Counted from the first letter of the stretch, positions 3,151 through 25,758 are shown. The stretch: DNA of 64,000 nt from Blastocladiella emersonii ATCC 22665 (GCA_025594325.1 JANHCV010000010.1:1054001-1118000); one strand, 5' to 3'. A program made the numbers and translations. Notes: generated from the letters alone by a model not told the origin.

Positions 3151-3321
3151 TGGGACGGGGCTCTTTTTTTTTGGTCAGCAATTTTTCATGGCTTGGTTGC
3201 GGGCTGTGCGGTGAGTCGCCACACGACGCGTCTGTGTCGCGCGTTCGAACGCTGAAGCGGTCGCGGGCGTGCCGAAGACTTGACGTGAGCGAGAGCCACT
3301 GGTCCTGTACACTGATGACGA

Positions 3322-5150
3322 GCACGACGAGCGACGGTGGTCAGCAAAGACAATGGCGTGCGAGTTGTTTGACGAGCTGTGGCGCGTCGCGTCCTGCCGC
3401 CGCGTGAGGGTGGCCGCGCCACACTGATCGGGTTCTCTCCACAGCACCTTCGGTCTCGCTTCTTGCGAAACTGACGTGCTTTACACTGGACGAATCGATC
3501 GTAGCGATGAACTATGCGGGTAAGCGTAAGCGTACTTGATCACCGCGAACTGGCGAGCGATCAGTGTGCGTTCACGTTGCGTTTTCCGACCGCTGGAAAA
3601 CAGCTTGCGCTCATGGCCACCGTGGCCGTGATTCGGGCGCAGCCAAGAGCTGCCCTGGTCCAAGGCGCAGCTGGCCAGAAAACGGAGTATAAGAATCGCG
3701 GAAACGTGGCCCTTGTTCTGAACCGATGTGGCGCGACCAGACCATGGTTGTTTCCTATTCCTCGCCGCGCGGCACAATATTGCTCCGCTCATACTTGCTG
3801 CAGCTAGCCAAGCGTGACGCGCTTGCAGTGTTACTATCACGCGTATTGAACAGGACTGGTCGCATTCGTGGTCATTATGGGCACAGTGGACGATGGCTTT
3901 GGCGACCAACAATGTCGGAGCAGCGTTTTCATCTTTTATTAGGTCGCCGACTCGAGAACTATTTACCGCGTAGTGGCGGACCTGTCCCTACTCACGGCCA
4001 TGTGCATACGTATCGCTGTCCGTGGTTCGATCCTCGGCACTCTTGCTCGTGCAAGATTGCGGACCCCGTGCGTACGCTTACTCGCCTGAGATGGCCCGGG
4101 GTTTTTTTTTTTTTTTGCAAAATTATTGTTTGATATGTGCCGTGTGTGATCGGCTAGGTTTGGGTGCACAACGAACGGCGCTGGACATACTGGCGCGACG
4201 ACACACACATGGACAGGACTCCAAACGCTTCATAGCACACCATCTCAGTGCCGCGATTCCTCGCGTGAGACACGCCTTTGGATCGTCCACTTGATCTCAT
4301 TGCTTGACCTTATTGCTTGTCGCTTTTGGGGTCCTCGTCTACTCAATATGCGGGTCGCGATCACGGCTTGATCGTGCATACGAGCGCTCTGTGCTGCTGT
4401 TCTTTGTTCAGGAACACAACGAGCGACGGCGGTCAGCGTAAGACGCGAGTATGCAAACTTGTTTAACAAGACGTGGCGCGTCACGACGCGTGAGCGTGGC
4501 GGCGGAGAAAGGCTCGCACGCATCGCGGCCATGGCCATGGCCGCGCCATTTGTCGCAGAGGCGCGTCGCTCAAAATGGCCGTGATTTGCAACTTTCGCCG
4601 CGAGTTGTTGTTTCTCGCGGGAAAGACGACGCGCGACAACGTGCTGATAGACGGACCGCGTCAACAATTGTCGCCCGTTTGTAGCTCTAGAGCAAGAAGC
4701 ACGCGAAAGTCTCGCGCGCATCGCGTCCGTTGCTATGGCCGCGGCCATCGTCACGGTTCGCGTGCCGCTGCACGCGAGCTACGTTTGTGCGGCGAGGATG
4801 AGATGCCGCCACCAACAATGCACCGTATCGCGACCACAATCGATCCGCGTCGAGCTCTTGTACCGTAGAACAAGTAGAACAAAAGTCACGCGCTTGAATG
4901 CGATCAAGGTTCGCGCGCAAGTCGCTGCTTGACACACGGCCACCGTGGCCATGGCTTTGGCGCGGCCATGATCCAAGGCGTAGTTGGCCAAAACGGAGTC
5001 TGTGAAGCGCGAAAGCGTGACCCTTAACATGGCCCGCTGTGTCGCGACCTGAGCGACCATGGAGACCGCTGGTTCCCTGACGTGCACGCGGCGCGGTACT
5101 GATTCGCTCATCCTTGTTGCAGCTGGCCCTGCGCGACGCGCTTGTTGCGA
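3322..5150. repeat. Diverged direct duplication (about 3322-3420 = 4416-4510 and 3614-3830 = 4937-5150), probably relics of a paralogous gene pair
   Basis: Shared colinear blocks: ACGAGCGACGG(T/C)GGTCAGC, GGCCACCGTGGCC, TCCAAGGCG(C/T)AG(C/T)TGGCCA, AAACGGAGT, CGCTCAT(A/C)CTTG(C/T)TGCAGCT. No intact shared ORF. Confidence 0.65.
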
Positions 5151-11600: not shown

Positions 11601-13701
11601 CGGGCAAGTTCGAGCTGCTCGACCGCATCCTGCCCAAGCTGTTCAAGACGGGCCACCGCGTCCTCATGTTCTTCCAGATGACCCAGGTCATGGAGATCAT
11701 GTCCGACTACCTCAACTTCCGCGGCTGGCAGCACCTCCGCCTCGACGGATCCACCAAGGCCGACGACCGCCAGGACCAGCTCAAGGCCTTCAACGCCCCC
11801 GACTCGCCCTACCTCATGTTCCTCCTCTCGACGCGCGCCGGCGGGCTCGGGCTCAACCTCCAGACCGCCGATACCGTCATCATCTTCGACTCGGACTGGA
11901 ACCCGCACCAGGATCTGCAGGTACGTCCGTGGGCGTGTGGGATGTGGGGGTGGCGGTCGCTGACTTACCGCTCTCGCTCATGTAGGCGCAAGATCGCGCG
12001 CACCGCATCGGGCAGACCAAGGAGGTGCGCATTTTCCGCCTCATCACCGAGAACTCGATCGAGGAGCGCATCCTCGCGCGCGCGCAGTTCAAGCTCGACA
12101 TGGACGGCAAGGTGATCCAGGCCGGCAAGTTCGACAACAAGTCGACGCCCGAGGAGCGCGAGCAGTTCCTGCGGTCGCTCATCGAGCAGGACAACGACGC
12201 CAAGGACACGACGACGGGCGGCGGCGACGCGGCCGACCCCGACGACCCCGACGAGCTCGGCAACGACGAGCTCAACGAGGTGCTCGCCCGCGGCGACCAC
12301 GAGCTCGCCATCTTCCGCCAAATGGACGCGGAGCTCGCCCGCCACGAGGAGCAGCTCGCCCGCGACCTCGGCCTCGACCGCCCGCCCGAGCGCCTCATGT
12401 CCGACGCCGAGCTCCCCGCCGTCATCCGACGCGATATCGGCGCCCTCCTCAAGGCCCAGGCCGACGCCGACAAGATCACCGAGGGATCGCGCCGCGCTAC
12501 CCGCCGCGGCGGCATCGTCTACGACGACGGGCTCACCGAGGACCAGTACATTGCCGCTATCGAGGCCGAGGCCGATGGGCTCGACGCCGCGTCCGCCGTC
12601 TCGGCGGCCGCCCCCGCCGCCTCCACGCGCCGCGGAGCGCGTAAGGCCGCCGCCAAGGTCCGCGGTAACAGCGACTACGAGGACAATGACCTCGACGGCG
12701 GTGCCGCTTCCGCCGCTGCCGCGGCTGCCCCTCCCGCGCCCGTCGCCGAGGAGGCCCCCGTCAAGCGCAAGCGCGGGCGGCCCAAGAAGGCCGCGGCCGC
12801 CGACTCGGACCTCGACGCGGTCGCGCCGCCGGCGCCCAAGCGGTCCAAGAAGTCGGCCAGCGCCGCGTCGACGCCCGCGCCGTCCTTCTTCGTGCCGCCG
12901 CCGCCGCCCACGGTCCCGCTCGACCAGATGCCCGACTCGGTGCGCGCCGCGTACGGCGTCATGACGCGCGTGCTCGAGGCCATTGACACCGCCGTCGACC
13001 CCGACGACGACAACCGCCTGCGCGCCGATCTGTTCCAGGAGCTCCCCGACCGCACCGTGTACCCGACGTACTACATTGAGATCCGCCGGCCCATCTCGCT
13101 CGAGGAGATTGGCGCCGCGGTCGACGGGTTCCTCTACTCGCGGTCCAGCGCCACCGACGCACTCAACGGGTTCGCCGCCGATATCCGGCTCATGTTCAGC
13201 AACGCGCGCCAGTTCAACCAGGAGGGGTCGTTCGTCTACATCGACGCCGAGGTCCTCGAGGCGCTCGCGCTCGCTAAGATCGCGGAGCTGCGGCACACGA
13301 TCAACCAGGCGCCCGCGCCCGCGCCGGCGGCTCCCGTGGCAGCGGCTCCGGCGCCTGCACCCGCACCCGCACCCGTCGCGCCGAACGCGGGGTACCCGCA
13401 GCAGCAGCAGTACGCGGCCGCCGCGGCCGCCGCGGCCCCGCCCCCGGCCGCGCAGCAGCCGCACCCGCAGTACCACCACGCGCAGCACCCGCAGTACCAG
13501 CAGCCACCGCCGTCGCGGCACCCGCAGCACGCGCACCCGCACCCGCAGCAGCAGTACGCGCCGCCGCCACACCCACAGCAGCAGCAGCAGCACCCGCAGT
13601 ACGACCCGGCCGCGTACGCGGCGTACCAGCAGCAGCAACAGCAGTACCAGCAGCGCCAGCAGCACCAGGGCCAGGGCGGGTATGGCGGGCCAGGGTACTG
13701 A
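8692..13701 (+). CDS. SNF2: SWI/SNF (Snf2/Sth1/BRG1-type) chromatin-remodelling ATPase with QLQ, HSA, SNF2 helicase, AT-hook and bromodomain
   Basis: [10 protein letters not shown] (QLQ-like), [38 protein letters not shown], bromodomain [10 protein letters not shown]. Introns 8941..9010 and 11921..11985. Confidence 0.96.
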
Positions 13702-14223
13702 GGCCGCGGAGAAGACGGAGCGGAGCGAGAGTTGTGATGTGAAGGGAGGAGAGGAGGTTGAGGAGTATAGTTTTATTTGCGTATCCCCGTTGCTGGCCTC
13801 GCCCGCCCCTCTTTCAGTGCGTTCCGCGATGTGGCTCTCGTTCGATGGACCGAGCTGCCTCAAAACGACGCGACACGGCCATGACCATGGTGGTCCGGGG
13901 CGGCGGCGCGGTCGCTCGCAGGCAGGGCGGCAGTTCGAGCCGCTGCTTCCAGCCGTCGTTGAGCCGCAGGATGCTCGCGTCTTCGCGGTCCTCCTATCGT
14001 CACCGCATGGCGCAGACGCGTATGATGTCAAGCGAACGAGTGAATCGCTCCCCATCGCGGCCAGCGAAGCTCAGACTGATGCGGAGCGCGACGCGATCAG
14101 CTGACGGGTCACGCCATTTCCCGACGCGTCTCTCGGCGCCTTCGGAACGCGAGCTGACATCTCTTGGCCATCAATGGAGTCGGCAAAGTAAGACGTGGTA
14201 TATTGATGCGCTGCACGGCGGCG

Positions 14224-19559: not shown

Positions 19560-20811
19560 CTAAACGGCCTCCTCCAAGCTTTCCGCGTACCACGCCATGG
19601 CTCTCGTATTTTTCGTGAAGCTTGCACGCTTGACCGCGGCCTCCCAGAAAGTTAGCTCAGCCGCAGCGAGCTTGGCACGGGCGAGCGCCCTCGACTTGGA
19701 CACGGGTCCGGAGGAATCCGAGTCGCTTTCCAAGTCAGAGTCCGAATCCGAGTCGCCATCGGACGCATAGTTTGATACAGAATTGAAGTAATCATCCGAC
19801 GCGAACATGGTGCTCAGGAACCAGGAAAGCACCTCAGCGTCGTTGAAGGTGATGGCCTCCTCCAGCGCGCAGATCCAAAAGTCACGCTTCGTAGCGTTTT
19901 GATTGAAAAAGTGCTCCCAAGGACTTAACCAAGTGTCCCGCCAGCGCTCGCGTCGAGGGCGGCGGTCAATGCCGTCAGGCAGCAGCAGACCAGACCGCTT
20001 GACGAGGAATGTAGCATCAATCTTTTGGAGAACCCAGTCAAGAACGTGAAGATGTTTGCGTCGGATCGCCCCCGCGACCAGTTCGTCCCACCGAACGTTG
20101 GTTTCGTATTCGCTGTTTTCGTCTTCCTCAAAGTTACTCGCAATTCCGAGGCTCCCCGCTTCGAGGGCACGCTCGACGATATTGAATTCGCGCTCATGCG
20201 AGGAGCAGTCGTGTTCGAGAACCCAGAACAGCGCGTCGCTGTTGTCGCATTCAATGGCAAGTTCCAACGCGCGAGAAGAGAGTTTCAGCTCGAGTCGCAA
20301 TTTGGACCACCACAGGAGCGTGTCAAATTGGCCGCCGCTGATAGCCTCGTCAATCGCAAGTTTCTTGTCGGTATCTCGCTTGACGTAGCTGCATTTATGA
20401 AGCCCGTCGAGTGCGCAAACCGAGTCCGTGGGCGGAAACGGCGTCCTCGGGATGAGAGTTGCCCGCAAGTGCTCTGACGGATACATCGAGGATGTCGTTG
20501 CGACGCGCGACGCAGGCCAGGCAGATGAAAAGCTCGGCCCCCGCGGGGTCGGACGTTGGACGACAATGGCCAAGCAGCAGCGCACGGAAGGCCGCGCACT
20601 CCGGCTTCAGAGCTCGCCACATCTGAGCGTGGAGCGAATGACGCAGCACGGTGCTCCGAAGTCGGGTGAGTCCGGGAAGGACTCGCAGGAGCGGAAACGG
20701 GTCCGCCCACACATCTTGCCAGACGGCTTGGACGAGAACCAAGTCGACGAGTTCATCAGACAAGCTCGGCTGACGCCAATGCGACAAGTTATTACATGTT
20801 CCGTTATTCAT
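19560..20811 (-). pseudogene. F-box-like/ankyrin-like repeat protein, paralog C, frameshifted and C-terminally short
   Basis: MNNGTCNNLSHW..LSDELVDLVL..DPFPLLRV. Frameshift near 20425 into the frame with AISGGQFDTLLWWS, VRWDELV and KRDFWICALEEA. The stop at 19560 falls before the LSDDA tail seen in A and B. Confidence 0.72.
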
Positions 20812-20891
20812 GGTTGGTGTGTGGGTACCGAGCGGGAGCTGAAACGTTTCTGCTCGGTTTTGATCAAAGTGTCTCACAGCCTGCGCACTGA

Positions 20892-20916
20892 TCACATGAT
20901 ATCCCAACGCGTCTCA
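20892..20916 (-). promoter_or_regulatory. Conserved bipartite motif upstream of paralog C
   Basis: TCACATGATAT-cccaa-CGCGTCTCA, 81 nt upstream of the ATG. Confidence 0.65.
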
Positions 20917-21010
20917 ACGGGCTCCGTCAATGCCCCTAGAAAAAGAGTCTCCCAGCTTACCGCGGGAGACGCGACGAACCCATTTTTCTTGCTTCTCTTC
21001 CGTCCCGCTT

Positions 21011-22903
21011 CTATGACATAGCTATATTTCCGCCACCATTCTCTGGTGGCATCGCAACCGGCGCCAACGAGACCGCCAGCGCGGTCACATCCCCGCCGCC
21101 CTCCTCAATCCTTCTCGCCTTGACTTGTTTGGCGTGGCGCGCCGCGTGATACTGGAGGACGCTCTCAAACGAGCTCTCGACGAGAAGTCCAAGACTGGCA
21201 AGCAAGCTGAGAACCGACGGGAGACGGAGCCACGGCGGCGATTCGAAGGTCGCGACGACGATGAAGGTGGTCCAGAGCATGATTAGGGCCAGCGTAAGCC
21301 ACCGAAAGCTGGCCGTGAGCGGGACCTCGAGCGCGCCTCGCCGCGCGTTGCGGTCGGCCTTCTTGCGCGTGGCGAGGACCGGGAGCGACGTGAGCAGGAG
21401 CTGCGACTTGCCCATGACCTTGGCCGCCAGCTTGGTCGGGCCGGCGCTGCTACTGGCGGCGACAGCTTGACTGTCACTCGTCGAAGCCGACGCGGATGGC
21501 GAGGTCACGACATTGCTTTCCCGCACCGTGTCGCCACCGCTCGGCGAGCTCCTGGTACTGTCCGACCCGGCAGTAGAGAGCTCGTGGCCACTCGACTGGC
21601 GGCGGTCGACGATGATTGAGCTCTGTCGGAACGCGACGTGCAGAGTCCAGAGCGCGCCCGACAGGATCATGAGCGGGAAGAGTCCGAGAAGCACGAATCC
21701 CCACTTCGGGTAGATGGAGCCGACGAGCCAGACGCGCGGCTCCGTCGCCGCGCCGTGGTTCGCGAGCTCGACGATATGCGTCGCGATCACAATCTCCTGG
21801 ACGAGCAGCATCCCAACGCTGAGCGTATCGACGGCCGTGAGAAGCCGCTTGCGCGAGTCAGGGCTTGCGACGAGCAGGACCGCGTGACGGCGGAAAGTGG
21901 CCATGCACTTGATCGGCGCGTAGGGCGCAAAGGTGAGCAGGAAGACGACGCGATAGACGAGGTAGTTGGCGGTGCCCGCGGTCAGGGTCACGGTGAGCAT
22001 GACCATGTTGTTGACCGCATCGATGGCCATCATGACGGCGAGCGCGAAGAGAAGCCGGGTCCGGATGCTCCGTGACGACTGCCCTGCAGCGGCGCCGTGA
22101 CATGAGCGCGACCACGGTAGTCGCGCGGCCACCTCGGGGAACAGCCGCGGAAGCACGGTGTCGATGGTCGCGAGGTTGACGAGAAGGGACACGGCGTAGA
22201 CGGCAATAGAGACCTTGCGTAAAGTCGGGGCCCGACTTTCGGGTGGTCCCGGAAGGCCTCCCGTCACGTGAGTGAGGCAGCGCCACGCGCCACTTCGGGC
22301 ATCCAGCCAGCTCTTGTCGCGGCCGAGCACCGGCCGCTCCCCACCCCCGCTCTCAGAAAACCCTGTGCGCGAGCACTCGCGGCATTGGATGGGTCTTGAG
22401 GTGCACCTCATGAGAGAACACAGCGATGAGAGCAGCCCGCGCGACGTTGCGGGAAGCCAGCCCTCATATACGGCGGAGGCCCTCTCGACGCGACGCGCGG
22501 TGTTGCTCGTCTCCATAAGCTTTCATGCGCTCTCGAAGTCACGATGGACACGGTGTCCAACGCGTTCTGTGCGGTGGCGCAGGCTGCGGTGCGACGACGC
22601 ACTGCAGCTTTGGCCCACGAGGCCTCACTCAGCATCGGAACTTCTCGGAACCCTCCCCTCTCAACAGCTCCCTGTTCTGGCACCCCGAGACTCGGCGAGG
22701 ACCGACCCCGAGAAAAGTCGGGTCCCCCGAGAAAAGTCGGGGCCGGTGCTCGCGCGGGCCTGTGCATTACGCCACACCGCGTGGCTGAATGCATGGGGCC
22801 AGGACGAAAGTCGGGCCCGACTTTTCGCAAGGTCTCTAATCGAGTTGCGCAACTCGGGCACGTGTATGCCGGCCCATGCGCGCGAATCTGGTTCAGCGTC
22901 CAT
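21011..22903 (-). pseudogene. Orphan 7TM (GPCR-like) protein, paralog 1, interrupted by a MITE in codon 22
   Basis: Removing 22208..22837 plus one AAT joins MDAEPDSRAWAGIHVPELRNS-I to AVYAVSLLVNLATIDTVLPRLFP in frame (419 aa). This aligns without gaps to RNSIAIFSLSLVVALTGIAIILPRTFP of the paralog at 24415..25758. Confidence 0.8.
22208..22837. mobile_element. 630-bp non-autonomous DNA transposon (MITE) with 33-34-bp TIRs and a 3-bp AAT target-site duplication
   Basis: Left TIR AGAGACCTTGCGTAAAGTCGGGGCCCGACTTTCG (22208-22241). Right TIR CGAAAGTCGGGCCCGACTTTTCGCAAGGTCTCT (22805-22837). AAT at 22205-22207 and 22838-22840. Internal CCCCGAGAAAAGTCGGG x2 (22706-22722, 22725-22741). No transposase ORF recognised. 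Confidence 0.9.
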
Positions 22904-23250
22904 GGCTATGATACATTGCTTTAAGTCAAGGTCGATGCGGAGCCCGGGAGGCTCGACTAGCAATCAGGGCGAAACGACGCGAAGCGTTGACCGCGAACCG
23001 GATGGGTCAGCCTTGTTCGCGAGTGCCGAGGCCCGGGAGACGCGTGCCTTGTCTCCCACTCTCCTCGCGTCTGTCCATCTCGCGACAGGACGACAAGGCC
23101 GGATCCTTTTGCATCATACTTCGCATCAAAATCAACCGTATAGCCCAACGAAAGCCGTCTCTTATGGCGACGGATCCTGCCGCAAGTACGACAAGCTGCC
23201 GCCGCGACGCGAATCTGTCTCGCACGGTCAACAGGGACGCGTTTTGATGG

Positions 23251-23538
23251 GCAAACAAATATGCGGGGGGCGCAACTCCGTTTGTCGTGGGTTTATCAAT
23301 GACAAGCAAGTCGAACTGCGCATTCTCGCCAATCGAGTCGAGGACGTTGGCCAGCCCGTTCGTGTCGGGCCCGCGTGCCGTCTCGTAGTCGCCGTTGAGG
23401 TCCGTGTCCTTGGACACGTAGTACTGGCCGTCGTCGGCGTTGCGCACCACGCTCGTGTCCAGGATCCCGTCGCGGTTCGTGTCGAGCTCGCCGGCCACAA
23501 GCTGGCCGTTGCGGTACGTCGTGGTCGCGTCGGCCACG
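23251..23538 (-). other. Start-less coding-like fragment with DxN/DxDG repeats, opposite in orientation to the adjacent coding-like DNA
   Basis: GVADATTTYRNGQLVAGELDTNRDGILDTSVVRNADDGQYYVSKDTDLNGDYET in strongly GC3-biased codons. The plus-frame translation over it is a typical V/R/G/H antisense shadow. Confidence 0.5.
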
Positions 23539-24360
23539 CCATCAAGTCCGACTACGGTGCGGGCCAGGTCCAGAACACGCCGCCGCGCTCGGCCAACTTC
23601 ACCATCGACGACAAGGACACGAGCGAGGCCGCCGACAAGGACAGCGGCTACGGCTACGAGTTGGCGCCCGCGCCGTTAAGCAGCAGCCGCAAGTCGTCGG
23701 TGCCAGTGGAGATCCCGCCGGCCCACTGGCAGATGCAGCGCGAACTACGAGCGCGTGTATGGGTTCACGTCCAGGAATACGTCGCCAGATCTTGCGCCCA
23801 TGTTCGCTCGCCCGAATCGTGTCGCTACCAGTCGGACTCGCGTCAAGGCGGGCTGGCCCGCCAGCTCGACCCGCAACAGCACAGCCACGCTCGCCAGCCC
23901 AGCTTGCACCGAGACGGCCGTGCCCGCCCGCCGGGTTAGCGTCGCACCTACCAGCCCTACTCGCACTACCACTTCCACCCCCGCCCGCCCGACTCGCTCC
24001 GCCACAACCGGCGCCTCCGCCATCCCGCCTCGCGTCGCGACGGTCTCGCTCGGCCCGCACGAGTCGTACTCGATCTCCGACTTTGACGCGCCAGGTTGAC
24101 CTTCGCGCTGCAGCTCGAACGGACCCCCGCGGACTACTCGGCAGTCGTGGCGGCGCACGCAGCCGCGCCAGCGCCGCGCGACGCGTGCAACGAGGCGTTG
24201 CGGGTCCGCGGGCCCGACGACCTGTACACGCCGCGGTGGGCGCGGGTCGGGCAAGCACAAGGACGCGCTGTGCCGGCTGTGTCCTCTGGTTCCGGGGCAC
24301 TGGGCCAACGCGGGGTGCGCGGCATACTTGACACACGTACATTTTCTTCCTGCGCGTTGA
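23539..24360 (+). pseudogene. Degraded gene with a Rua1-C/DUF4451-like Cys/His domain
   Basis: GPDDLYTPRW, then after a 2-nt loss near 24240, RGSGKHKDALCRLCPLVPGHWANAGCAAYLTH. This matches the fungal DLYTPRWxRGxG..KEGLCxxC..W..Y..H motif as I recall it. Upstream S/T/P-rich coding-like pieces lie in other frames. Confidence 0.55.
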
Positions 24361-24414
24361 CGGGGTACTGATTCTCCTCATGTCCTCTCTCTCCCTCGCA
24401 CGGCGCATCGATGG

Positions 24415-25758
24415 CTATAGAAACGACGGTGTCTCACTACTCGACTCCAGCCCCATCTTCTTCCCACAACTCTCCTCGGCCTTATGACCACCCAGCGCGC
24501 TGCTCGACCCACCCGCCGCGGCGCGCTTCTTGATCCTCGCCGCCTTCTGCTTGCGCTGATGAAATCTGAGCATCCACTCGAACGACGCCTCGGTGAGCAC
24601 GCTGATCCCCGAAATCAAGCTAAGCACGGCGCTCATGCGGAACGGGACCTCGCCCTGGTACACGGACGCGGCGAGGAACGCGACCCACTCGACCATGATC
24701 AGCGTCGTCAGCAGCTTGAAGGTCGCCGTCAGCGGGTACTTGATCCCGCGCCCGTGCAGCGCGCCGTCGGATGCGGCAGCGCGGCGAGAGAGGCCGCGGA
24801 GGAGGTCGCGGCTCCCCGTGCGATGCACGGGAGATGTGGTGGTGGTGGAGAGTGAGCCTGTGGACCCGAGTTCGGCGGACGCCTTGATACTTCCAGGACC
24901 GGCGCCGGCGGACGCCTTGATATTTCCGGGACCGGCGCCGGCGGGCGAGGCGGGCGGCTCGCTGTCGCGGCGGAACAGGCGCGCAAACAGGTTCCTGCCG
25001 GCAGCGACGACAGGGCTGCCCGGCGGCGGCGGCTGGCCGAGGTTCCCTGAACTCGCCGTGTGTGAATGGAACTCGAGGTCCGTGTCGCCATGCACGACGA
25101 CCGACTCCTTGGCGAACGCGATGCGGAGCGACCACATGGACCCGGCGAGGATCGTCGCGGGCAGCGAGAGGATTGGGTAGACGCACCAGAGCGGGACGAC
25201 CCACGCGTCGAGCCAATCGCGCGACGCCGCGCCCTGGCGGTGCAGGGAGACGAGCGAGATCAGGGTACCGGCCTCGTTGAGGACCAGCGTCACACCGCAC
25301 ACGACGTTGATGGCGCGCATGAACCGGCGGCGCCACGTCGGGTTCAGAACGACGAGGACCGACACGCGGCGCCCGACGCAGTGCGTCAGGATCGACCCGA
25401 TCGGGATAAATGTCACGAGCTTGATCCCGTTGAAGGCGAGGAAGTTGGCGGTGCCCGAGAGCCACACGTGCGACAGCATCGCTGGGTTGTTGATGGCGTC
25501 GGCCGTCAGGAGCACCGAGCATAGCAGCAGCAGGGCCAGGCGGACGTGGACGACGGTGCCGCGGCGGCGGCCGCGACCCGTTGGCCCCGTGGGCGGCGAA
25601 GAAGCGGCGGTTGCATCGCGTTCAAACAATCGTGGGAAGGTGCGCGGCAAGATGATCGCGATGCCCGTGAGCGCGACGACGAGCGAGAGGCTGAAGATCG
25701 CGATGCTGTTGCGGGCGACGACGGGGTCGATGGCGGGCGGCGGTGCATCTGCGTTCAT
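24415..25758 (-). CDS. Orphan 7TM (GPCR-like) protein, paralog 2, intact and intronless
   Basis: 447-aa ORF with seven hydrophobic segments, a long Ser/Gly-rich loop between TM5 and TM6, and a basic segment after TM7. Colinear with paralog 1 (e.g. DAINN/DAVNN, GTAN, PLTA(T/S)F, E(A/S)SFE). Confidence 0.8.
   Translation of the reverse strand: MNADAPPPAIDPVVARNSIAIFSLSLVVALTGIAIILPRTFPRLFERDATAASSPPTGPTGRGRRRGTVVHVRLALLLLCSVLLTADAINNPAMLSHVWLSGTANFLAFNGIKLVTFIPIGSILTHCVGRRVSVLVVLNPTWRRRFMRAINVVCGVTLVLNEAGTLISLVSLHRQGAASRDWLDAWVVPLWCVYPILSLPATILAGSMWSLRIAFAKESVVVHGDTDLEFHSHTASSGNLGQPPPPGSPVVAAGRNLFARLFRRDSEPPASPAGAGPGNIKASAGAGPGSIKASAELGSTGSLSTTTTSPVHRTGSRDLLRGLSRRAAASDGALHGRGIKYPLTATFKLLTTLIMVEWVAFLAASVYQGEVPFRMSAVLSLISGISVLTEASFEWMLRFHQRKQKAARIKKRAAAGGSSSALGGHKAEESCGKKMGLESSSETPSFL
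24873..24944. repeat. 33-bp in-frame tandem duplication inside the 7TM cytoplasmic loop
   Basis: CGGCGGACGCCTTGATA(C/T)TTCC(A/G)GGACCGGCGC x2, encoding AGAGPG(N/S)IKAS. Confidence 0.85.

Follow-up and report, generated by a model that had tools for sequence, protein, structure and literature searches.

Cut-and-paste transposons of the PHIS superfamily (PIF/Harbinger-ISL2EU-Spy) have been split into groups by the type of target site duplication (TSD) that they leave behind (Han et al. 2015, PMC4482050). One of these groups, Pangu, which is Harbinger2 in Repbase (Kojima 2025, PMC12730594), duplicates the sequence 5'-ANT-3', as confirmed by empty sites, and carries terminal inverted repeats (TIRs) of 11-40 bp, usually starting with AG or GG (Han et al. 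2015, PMC4482050). Pangu elements are present in fungi, plants and animals, and their nearest neighbour is the bacterial IS5, for which an ANT target is known as well (PMC4482050). A further lineage of the superfamily, PHISTA of rust fungi, duplicates TA (PMC12730594). Here, we describe a small element in a stretch of 64,000 nucleotides from Blastocladiella emersonii ATCC 22665 (GCA_025594325.1 JANHCV010000010.1:1054001-1118000), which is called the window throughout. An intronless gene for ETF-ubiquinone oxidoreductase in the window has an exact match on contig JANHCV010000010.1 of this assembly, with the nearest homologs in Catenaria and Allomyces, and JANHCV is also the accession prefix listed in the genome paper of the strain (PMC9730499). 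The element is a miniature inverted-repeat transposable element (MITE), which interrupts a gene for a protein with seven hydrophobic segments. Judged from its sequence, it is probably a recently inserted, non-autonomous cut-and-paste element of the PHIS superfamily and would belong to the Pangu/Harbinger2 lineage.

The ends of the element are formed by two inverted repeats (Table 1), which are distinguished by a single substitution (T/A at position 13) and an indel of one G. The outer 22 nt of the TIR are present at only two places in the 64 kb, which are the two ends of the element, and shuffles expect 0. Each TIR contains a palindrome, AAAGTCGGG-G-CCCGACTTT on the left and AAAGTCGGGCCCGACTTT on the right. 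The window has six AAAGTCGGG sites, every one of them within the element, with 0.35 expected and 0 of 100 shuffles reaching 6; they are arranged as one inverted (head-to-head) pair in each TIR and two direct copies near the right end. Folded as single-stranded DNA, the left TIR forms a hairpin of -7.9 kcal/mol, and the right-hand 138 nt (22700-22837) form a nested hairpin with a z-score of -4.75. An imperfect foldback between the second subterminal core and the palindrome of the right TIR is part of this region, and sensitive BLASTN aligns it in inverted orientation with 70% identity over 97 nt.

The element is flanked on both sides by AAT. Since these flanks are a direct and not an inverted repeat, they represent a duplication and are not part of the inverted repeat itself. 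Together with one copy of the TSD, the element measures 633 bp, which is exactly 211 codons. A preliminary description of this locus had reported a MITE with hairpin-bearing TIRs and an AAT TSD in codon 22 of the gene, TIRs that are separated by one substitution and one indel, and a palindrome whose core is repeated twice internally. Coordinates and reading frame agree with this description in all these points. Several of the six frames of the element are open over long stretches, which is typical of GC-rich DNA. For five open reading frames (ORFs) of the element no Pfam family was obtained at E<=1, and the element is without a match in Rfam. The TIRs, the TSD, the small size without coding capacity for a transposase and the existence of copies with differing flanks identify it as a non-autonomous TIR DNA transposon, that is, a MITE.

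Further copies became visible in contigs from three public sequencing runs of the strain (X1, X2 and X3), all derived from one sample, which were aligned to positions 20500-24500 at 80% likeness. Copy-number figures are summed contig depths, which by the tool's own warning are not copy numbers and are therefore to be taken as rough only. Both junctions of the element are spanned by independent contigs (20500-22236 and 22809-23529), which shows that the insertion is not an assembly artefact. In X1, both flanks have a summed depth of about 155 and the body of the element (22207-22727) has 288, about 1.9 times that of the flanks, and over the left TIR the depth is about 530 as estimated from bin means. 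The core of the right TIR reaches about 3300-3580 in X1 and about 607 versus a flank of 39 in X2, which corresponds to about 15-23 times single copy. Between the window and a contig of the body from X2, 2 of 583 positions are different. Read loosely, the genome contains one further near-identical full-length copy. Very roughly ten elements share the ends, and in some of them the right 140 bp are present as well, in a diverged form.

The overlaps of the contigs extend to 22207 and 22838, so that the copies have in common the T and the A that border the termini. The sister copy shares the T at 22207 and differs at 22206; on the right side the A is shared and the divergence starts at 22839. The outer A and T are thus kept and the next base outward varies, as expected for an A-N-T target. 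Furthermore, at least four other distinct flanks abut GGTCTCT among the loose contig ends listed, and these read ATT..., AATC..., AATCG... and AATCG.... Taken together with the two flanks in the window, which are AAT on the right and, read outward, ATT on the left, A-W-T is found in six out of six flanks, in a genome of about 65% G+C. It is reasonable to regard the family as low-copy and recently active. The term 'young', which had been given to the element beforehand, is a reasonable one as well, given the other copies, at least one of which is near-identical.

The same contigs bear on the possibility that no mobile insertion has taken place and that the segment is intron-like, a locally generated inverted repeat or an artefact of the assembly. 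For such a segment it would speak that 630 + 3 bp are a multiple of three and that in the one strain sequenced an empty site was not seen. Nevertheless, contigs run across both junctions, the same ends adjoin other flanks, at least four of them and unrelated, and the genome contains the body about two-fold. Also, three in-frame stops lie inside the element and the paralog of the gene is without such a segment. An origin of this kind is scarcely credible.

The flanks are better read as a 3-bp duplication of AAT than as a duplication of TA, although TA is present on both sides of the element as well (22207-08 and 22837-38). Removal of the element together with one AAT restores an ORF of 419 codons, which aligns to the intact paralog through the junction without a gap, with an identical RNSIA and a score of 62. 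Under the TA reading the frame is kept too, but an extra isoleucine is left behind, which forces a gap of one residue versus the paralog and lowers the score to 51. Taken alone, the excision alignment is suggestive, not decisive, in favour of the 3-bp TSD. The six flanks, all of which are A-W-T, and the direct AAT/AAT repeat point to a 3-bp A-N-T target, a constraint that a TA duplication with free flanks doesn't predict. The preference for 3 bp, which the preliminary description had derived from a precise excision colinear with the paralog, is therefore upheld.

An element duplicating TA would have the termini GAGACC...GGTCTC and would be either a Stowaway-like MITE that a Tc1/mariner/pogo transposase mobilises or part of the PHISTA lineage. 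The contig junctions show the TA to be common to every copy, the reading frame survives an excision under this model, and relatives within PHIS are able to duplicate TA, as PHISTA shows (PMC12730594). However, the bases beyond the TA are not free, since the second base past it is T in all six flanks of a GC-rich genome. In addition, the TA model requires an additional isoleucine and a gap versus the paralog, and the AAT/AAT direct repeat fits a 3-bp duplication. A TA-duplicating element is accordingly quite unlikely.

Combined with a 33-34-nt TIR that starts with AGAGACC, the AAT TSD gives the element both structural features by which Pangu is described. Like Pangu, it has a 3-bp A-N-T duplication and a TIR that lies within the range of 11-40 bp and starts with AG, it is found in a fungus, and it follows a cut-and-paste logic, which in Pangu includes non-autonomous derivatives. 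In contrast to Pangu, the element is not linked to a DDE transposase or a second ORF, only A or T was seen at the middle base of its target, and the published description mentions neither a palindrome within the TIR nor a repeated AAAGTCGGG core (PMC4482050). Moreover, Pangu has been reported in ascomycetes and basidiomycetes and not in the Blastocladiomycota.

The element had initially been compared with PIF/Harbinger-type transposons. Here, the broad superfamily remains the best fit, whereas the canonical duplication of this group is TWA and not AAT, and ANT is the hallmark of Pangu/Harbinger2 (PMC4482050). The accompanying suggestion that the AGAGACC terminus might mark an undescribed family needs a similar division: the terminus fits the described Pangu kind and calls for no undescribed class, and it is only the family in B. 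emersonii for which a record appears to be lacking. Tourist MITEs, which are linked to canonical PIF/Harbinger elements and include mPing, are likewise small non-coding elements with TIRs and a 3-bp TSD, lie in or near genes, are presumed to be mobilised in trans, and their precise excision would restore the frame. A canonical PIF/Harbinger element with a TWA (TAA or TTA) duplication was rejected, since neither TAA nor TTA is obtained on both sides, however the termini are placed; the flanks read ATA and TAA if the termini are GAGACC, and AAT on both sides if they are AGAGACC.

Within PHIS, ISL2EU elements insert into A|AT|T with a 2-bp AT duplication, an A/T-only target that resembles AAT/ATT. 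An ISL2EU element was rejected, since an AT duplication needs unequal termini, and a C and not a T follows the right-hand AT, both here and in three of the four other flanks. The bacterial IS5-family elements with an ANT target share the A-N-T duplication and are the phylogenetic neighbours of the Pangu transposases (PMC4482050). These elements are prokaryotic, autonomous and about 1-1.5 kb in size, in contrast to the eukaryotic and non-autonomous element described here.

The reiteration of the core has its counterpart in other superfamilies. In En/Spm and Ac/Ds elements, a short motif is reiterated in the TIR and the subterminal region, partly as inverted pairs. By analogy, the arrangement found here suggests multiple protein-binding sites, whereas the termini, the duplication lengths and the superfamilies are different. 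For hAT elements, which have a YARNG terminus and an 8-bp duplication, a TAGAG end would fit. Outside of TAGAGACC...GGTCTCTA, the adjoining eight bases read GACGGCAA and ATCGAGTT and do not form a repeat, and hAT was rejected.

The hairpins near both ends and the T preceding the left end also bring to mind a non-autonomous rolling-circle element of the Helitron2/Helentron type. Helitron2 elements have asymmetric inverted repeats of 8-15 bp, of which the 3' one is located upstream of a terminal hairpin at a distance of 20-30 bp from the end, and the described families have no duplication (PMC3627910). The repeats of the element in B. emersonii are symmetric, 33-34 nt long and reach to both extreme ends, they enclose the hairpin, and the element is flanked by a direct repeat of 3 bp. 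These elements were rejected as well, and a rolling-circle origin is very improbable.

Several observations weigh against a Pangu/Harbinger2 MITE. The proposed superfamily is based entirely on the duplication and the termini, and other superfamilies too make 3-bp duplications. Paired flanks are available for one copy only, the others being single ends taken from loose ends of contigs of one sample, and copy numbers are poorly captured by summed contig depth. A flank of low depth from X3, after 22836, does not read A-N-T. At the middle position of the target only A or T was seen, so that AWT and not ANT may be the true target. In three of the four other flanks a C follows the AAT, as in the right flank of the window, which could mean that the preferred target is longer or that the C stems from the extension of the alignment. 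Also, no contig that skips the element and thereby represents the empty site was present in this one strain and one sample. Finally, the searches made for an autonomous element with these TIRs, which were protein searches with translated frames of the MITE, did not retrieve one.

The element may also belong to a different superfamily with a 3-bp TSD (Zator, AcademX or CACTA/EnSpm-Plavaka-like) or to a wholly undescribed one with an AWT-specific target. A 3-bp duplication is not unique to PHIS, no transposase is tied to these TIRs, and palindrome-bearing TIRs with subterminal repeats are not mentioned for Pangu (PMC4482050). The termini do not resemble the CAC.../CACTA of EnSpm (PMC12730594), and Zator was present in only a handful of isolates in fungal surveys (PMC5751038). 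Since precisely the combination of A-N-T with an AG-starting TIR of 11-40 bp has been reported for Pangu (PMC4482050), another superfamily is unlikely.

For a Pangu/Harbinger2 element, the following mechanism is proposed. A DDE transposase of the PHIS superfamily (Pangu/Harbinger2), encoded elsewhere in the genome, would move the element in trans. This enzyme, perhaps together with the accessory DNA-binding protein which such elements usually encode, would recognise the 33-34-nt TIRs. The AAAGTCGGG cores are probable candidate binding sites, a role which we infer, as we do the superfamily and any residual expression of the interrupted gene. The A-N-T target would then be cut with a stagger of 3 nt, and repair of the gap would duplicate the target, here AAT.

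Two further scenarios, which even together are distinctly doubtful, depart from this mechanism. Either the element represents an undescribed cut-and-paste lineage of early-diverging fungi that is not moved by PHIS enzymes, has a strict AWT target, and whose enzyme or accessory protein would read the dimeric AAAGTCGGG/CCCGACTTT palindrome plus the subterminal half-sites, or an ATG inside the element would keep the receptor gene alive with a transposon-derived N-terminus. The positions of all features are listed in Table 1.

Table 1. Positions of the MITE, of its parts and of the affected gene in the window
Feature	Position	Strand	Basis or remark
MITE, 630 bp, non-autonomous, TIR-bounded	22208..22837	.	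no recognisable coding capacity
Left TIR, 34 nt, begins AGAGACC, holds palindrome 22221-22239	22208..22241	+	inverted-repeat pairs
Right TIR, 33 nt, palindrome 22807-22824 inside	22805..22837	-	inverted-repeat pairs
TSD, left copy AAT (gene strand: ATT = Ile codon 22)	22205..22207	.	directly abuts AGAGACC terminus
TSD, right copy AAT	22838..22840	.	sequence and contig junction
Subterminal direct pair of CCCCGAGAAAAGTCGGG (22706-22722 and 22725-22741)	22706..22741	+	spacing 19 bp
Nested imperfect foldback, second subterminal core with right TIR palindrome	22731..22826	.	30-nt arms, 73% complementary
Interrupted gene, codons 1-21 (MDAEPDSRAWAGIHVPELRNS)	22841..22903	-	reading frame and paralog alignment
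Interrupted gene, remainder: 397 codons and stop, all seven hydrophobic segments	21011..22204	-	
First in-frame stop for translation entering the element from the native ATG	22661..22663	-	59 codons into the element
Element-borne ATG in frame with the downstream gene	22514..22516	-	opens 501-codon ORF 21011..22516
Intact paralog, 447 aa	24415..25758	-	colinearity reference

The interrupted gene lies on the minus strand with its ATG at 22903-22901. Here, 21 codons ending in ...LRNS precede the duplicated ATT; in the order of the gene, ...LRNS is followed by ATT, the element, the second ATT and AVYAVSLL..., which continues to the stop at 21011. The insertion thus splits the gene exactly at codon 22, and the junction marks the start of the first hydrophobic segment. 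If translation starts at the native ATG, it is terminated by a stop within the element, behind which there are two more in-frame stops. The ATG inside the element opens an ORF which comprises 104 element-derived and 397 host codons and could yield a protein of 501 residues, in which a foreign N-terminus of 104 residues would precede the seven hydrophobic segments that are kept.

The 397-aa piece of the host protein is 29% identical to the intact paralog over the whole length (E 4e-34), and the paralog has no element-like segment. Seven hydrophobic segments are present in both proteins, the fifth and the sixth being separated by a long loop, and the earlier designation as a seven-transmembrane (7TM) gene would refer to these segments. 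No hit was obtained for the host protein in Pfam, and a search of 5.8 billion proteins with the 397-aa piece retrieved no homolog. An AlphaFold model calculated from the alignment of the two sequences was too poor for a structure search (pLDDT 38). A language-model search with the host protein gave weak leads to serpentine receptors. The putative label '7TM receptor' is drawn from the seven hydrophobic segments and these leads and is otherwise unsupported.

In exact protein look-ups, the intact 447-aa ORF and a neighbouring ORF of 696 aa (11968-14055) were not found. Neither of the two seven-segment paralogs is in the protein collection, and about 40,000 proteins have been deposited for this genome. 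The ORFs of the region 21011-25758 and the 696-aa neighbour may be missing from the public annotation or may have been modelled differently.

Beyond the contigs, a sensitive BLASTN search gave no further copy of the element within the window. Exact scans with the TIR gave 0 hits in bacterial and archaeal genome contigs and 0 hits in JGI metagenome contigs; both collections are without this fungus, so that these results say little. On the protein level, phmmer with one open frame of the right arm retrieved only three unrelated repeat proteins among 1.8 billion representatives. A word-based search with another frame of the element, which lies within an ORF of 555 aa, gave no match, and exact look-ups of two ORFs of the element found neither of them on record.

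The element documents a recently mobile family of DNA transposons in the Blastocladiomycota. In a fungal survey, Allomyces, the one sampled genome of this phylum, contained very few cut-and-paste elements (PMC5751038). The genome paper of the strain is without a discussion of transposons, as its text has no match to 'transpos' (PMC9730499). If the proposed assignment is true, the ANT-duplicating Pangu/Harbinger2 lineage would be extended to an early-diverging fungus. Furthermore, the insertion would be a natural knockout, or a replacement of the N-terminus, of one of two orphan seven-helix paralogs in a species that serves as a model of sensory biology. If the family is still active, a use in insertional mutagenesis would be possible. 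The accepted view of how such elements work is unchanged.

Three further observations concern the surroundings of the gene. About 400 bp upstream of the ATG of the interrupted gene, positions 23314-23581 have a summed depth of 2-4 times single copy, and other contigs match there at about 89% identity, for example a contig of 4105 nt over 23346-23447. The raised depth together with these matches indicates that 23314-23581 is repeated elsewhere in the genome. In the GC-rich region adjoining the intact paralog, an X1 contig with a depth of 145 passes directly from 24096 to 24181 and lacks 84 bases which are present in the window, and Tandem Repeats Finder reports no repeat at 24096-24181; this skip may reflect a length variant or a paralogous copy that is shorter by 28 codons. 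On the other side of the gene, a stretch of 33 nt (20883-20915) upstream of an F-box/ankyrin paralog region is matched by a contig that is unrelated on both sides, and a small rise in depth surrounds it (20634-21035). This stretch is a short motif shared with another locus.

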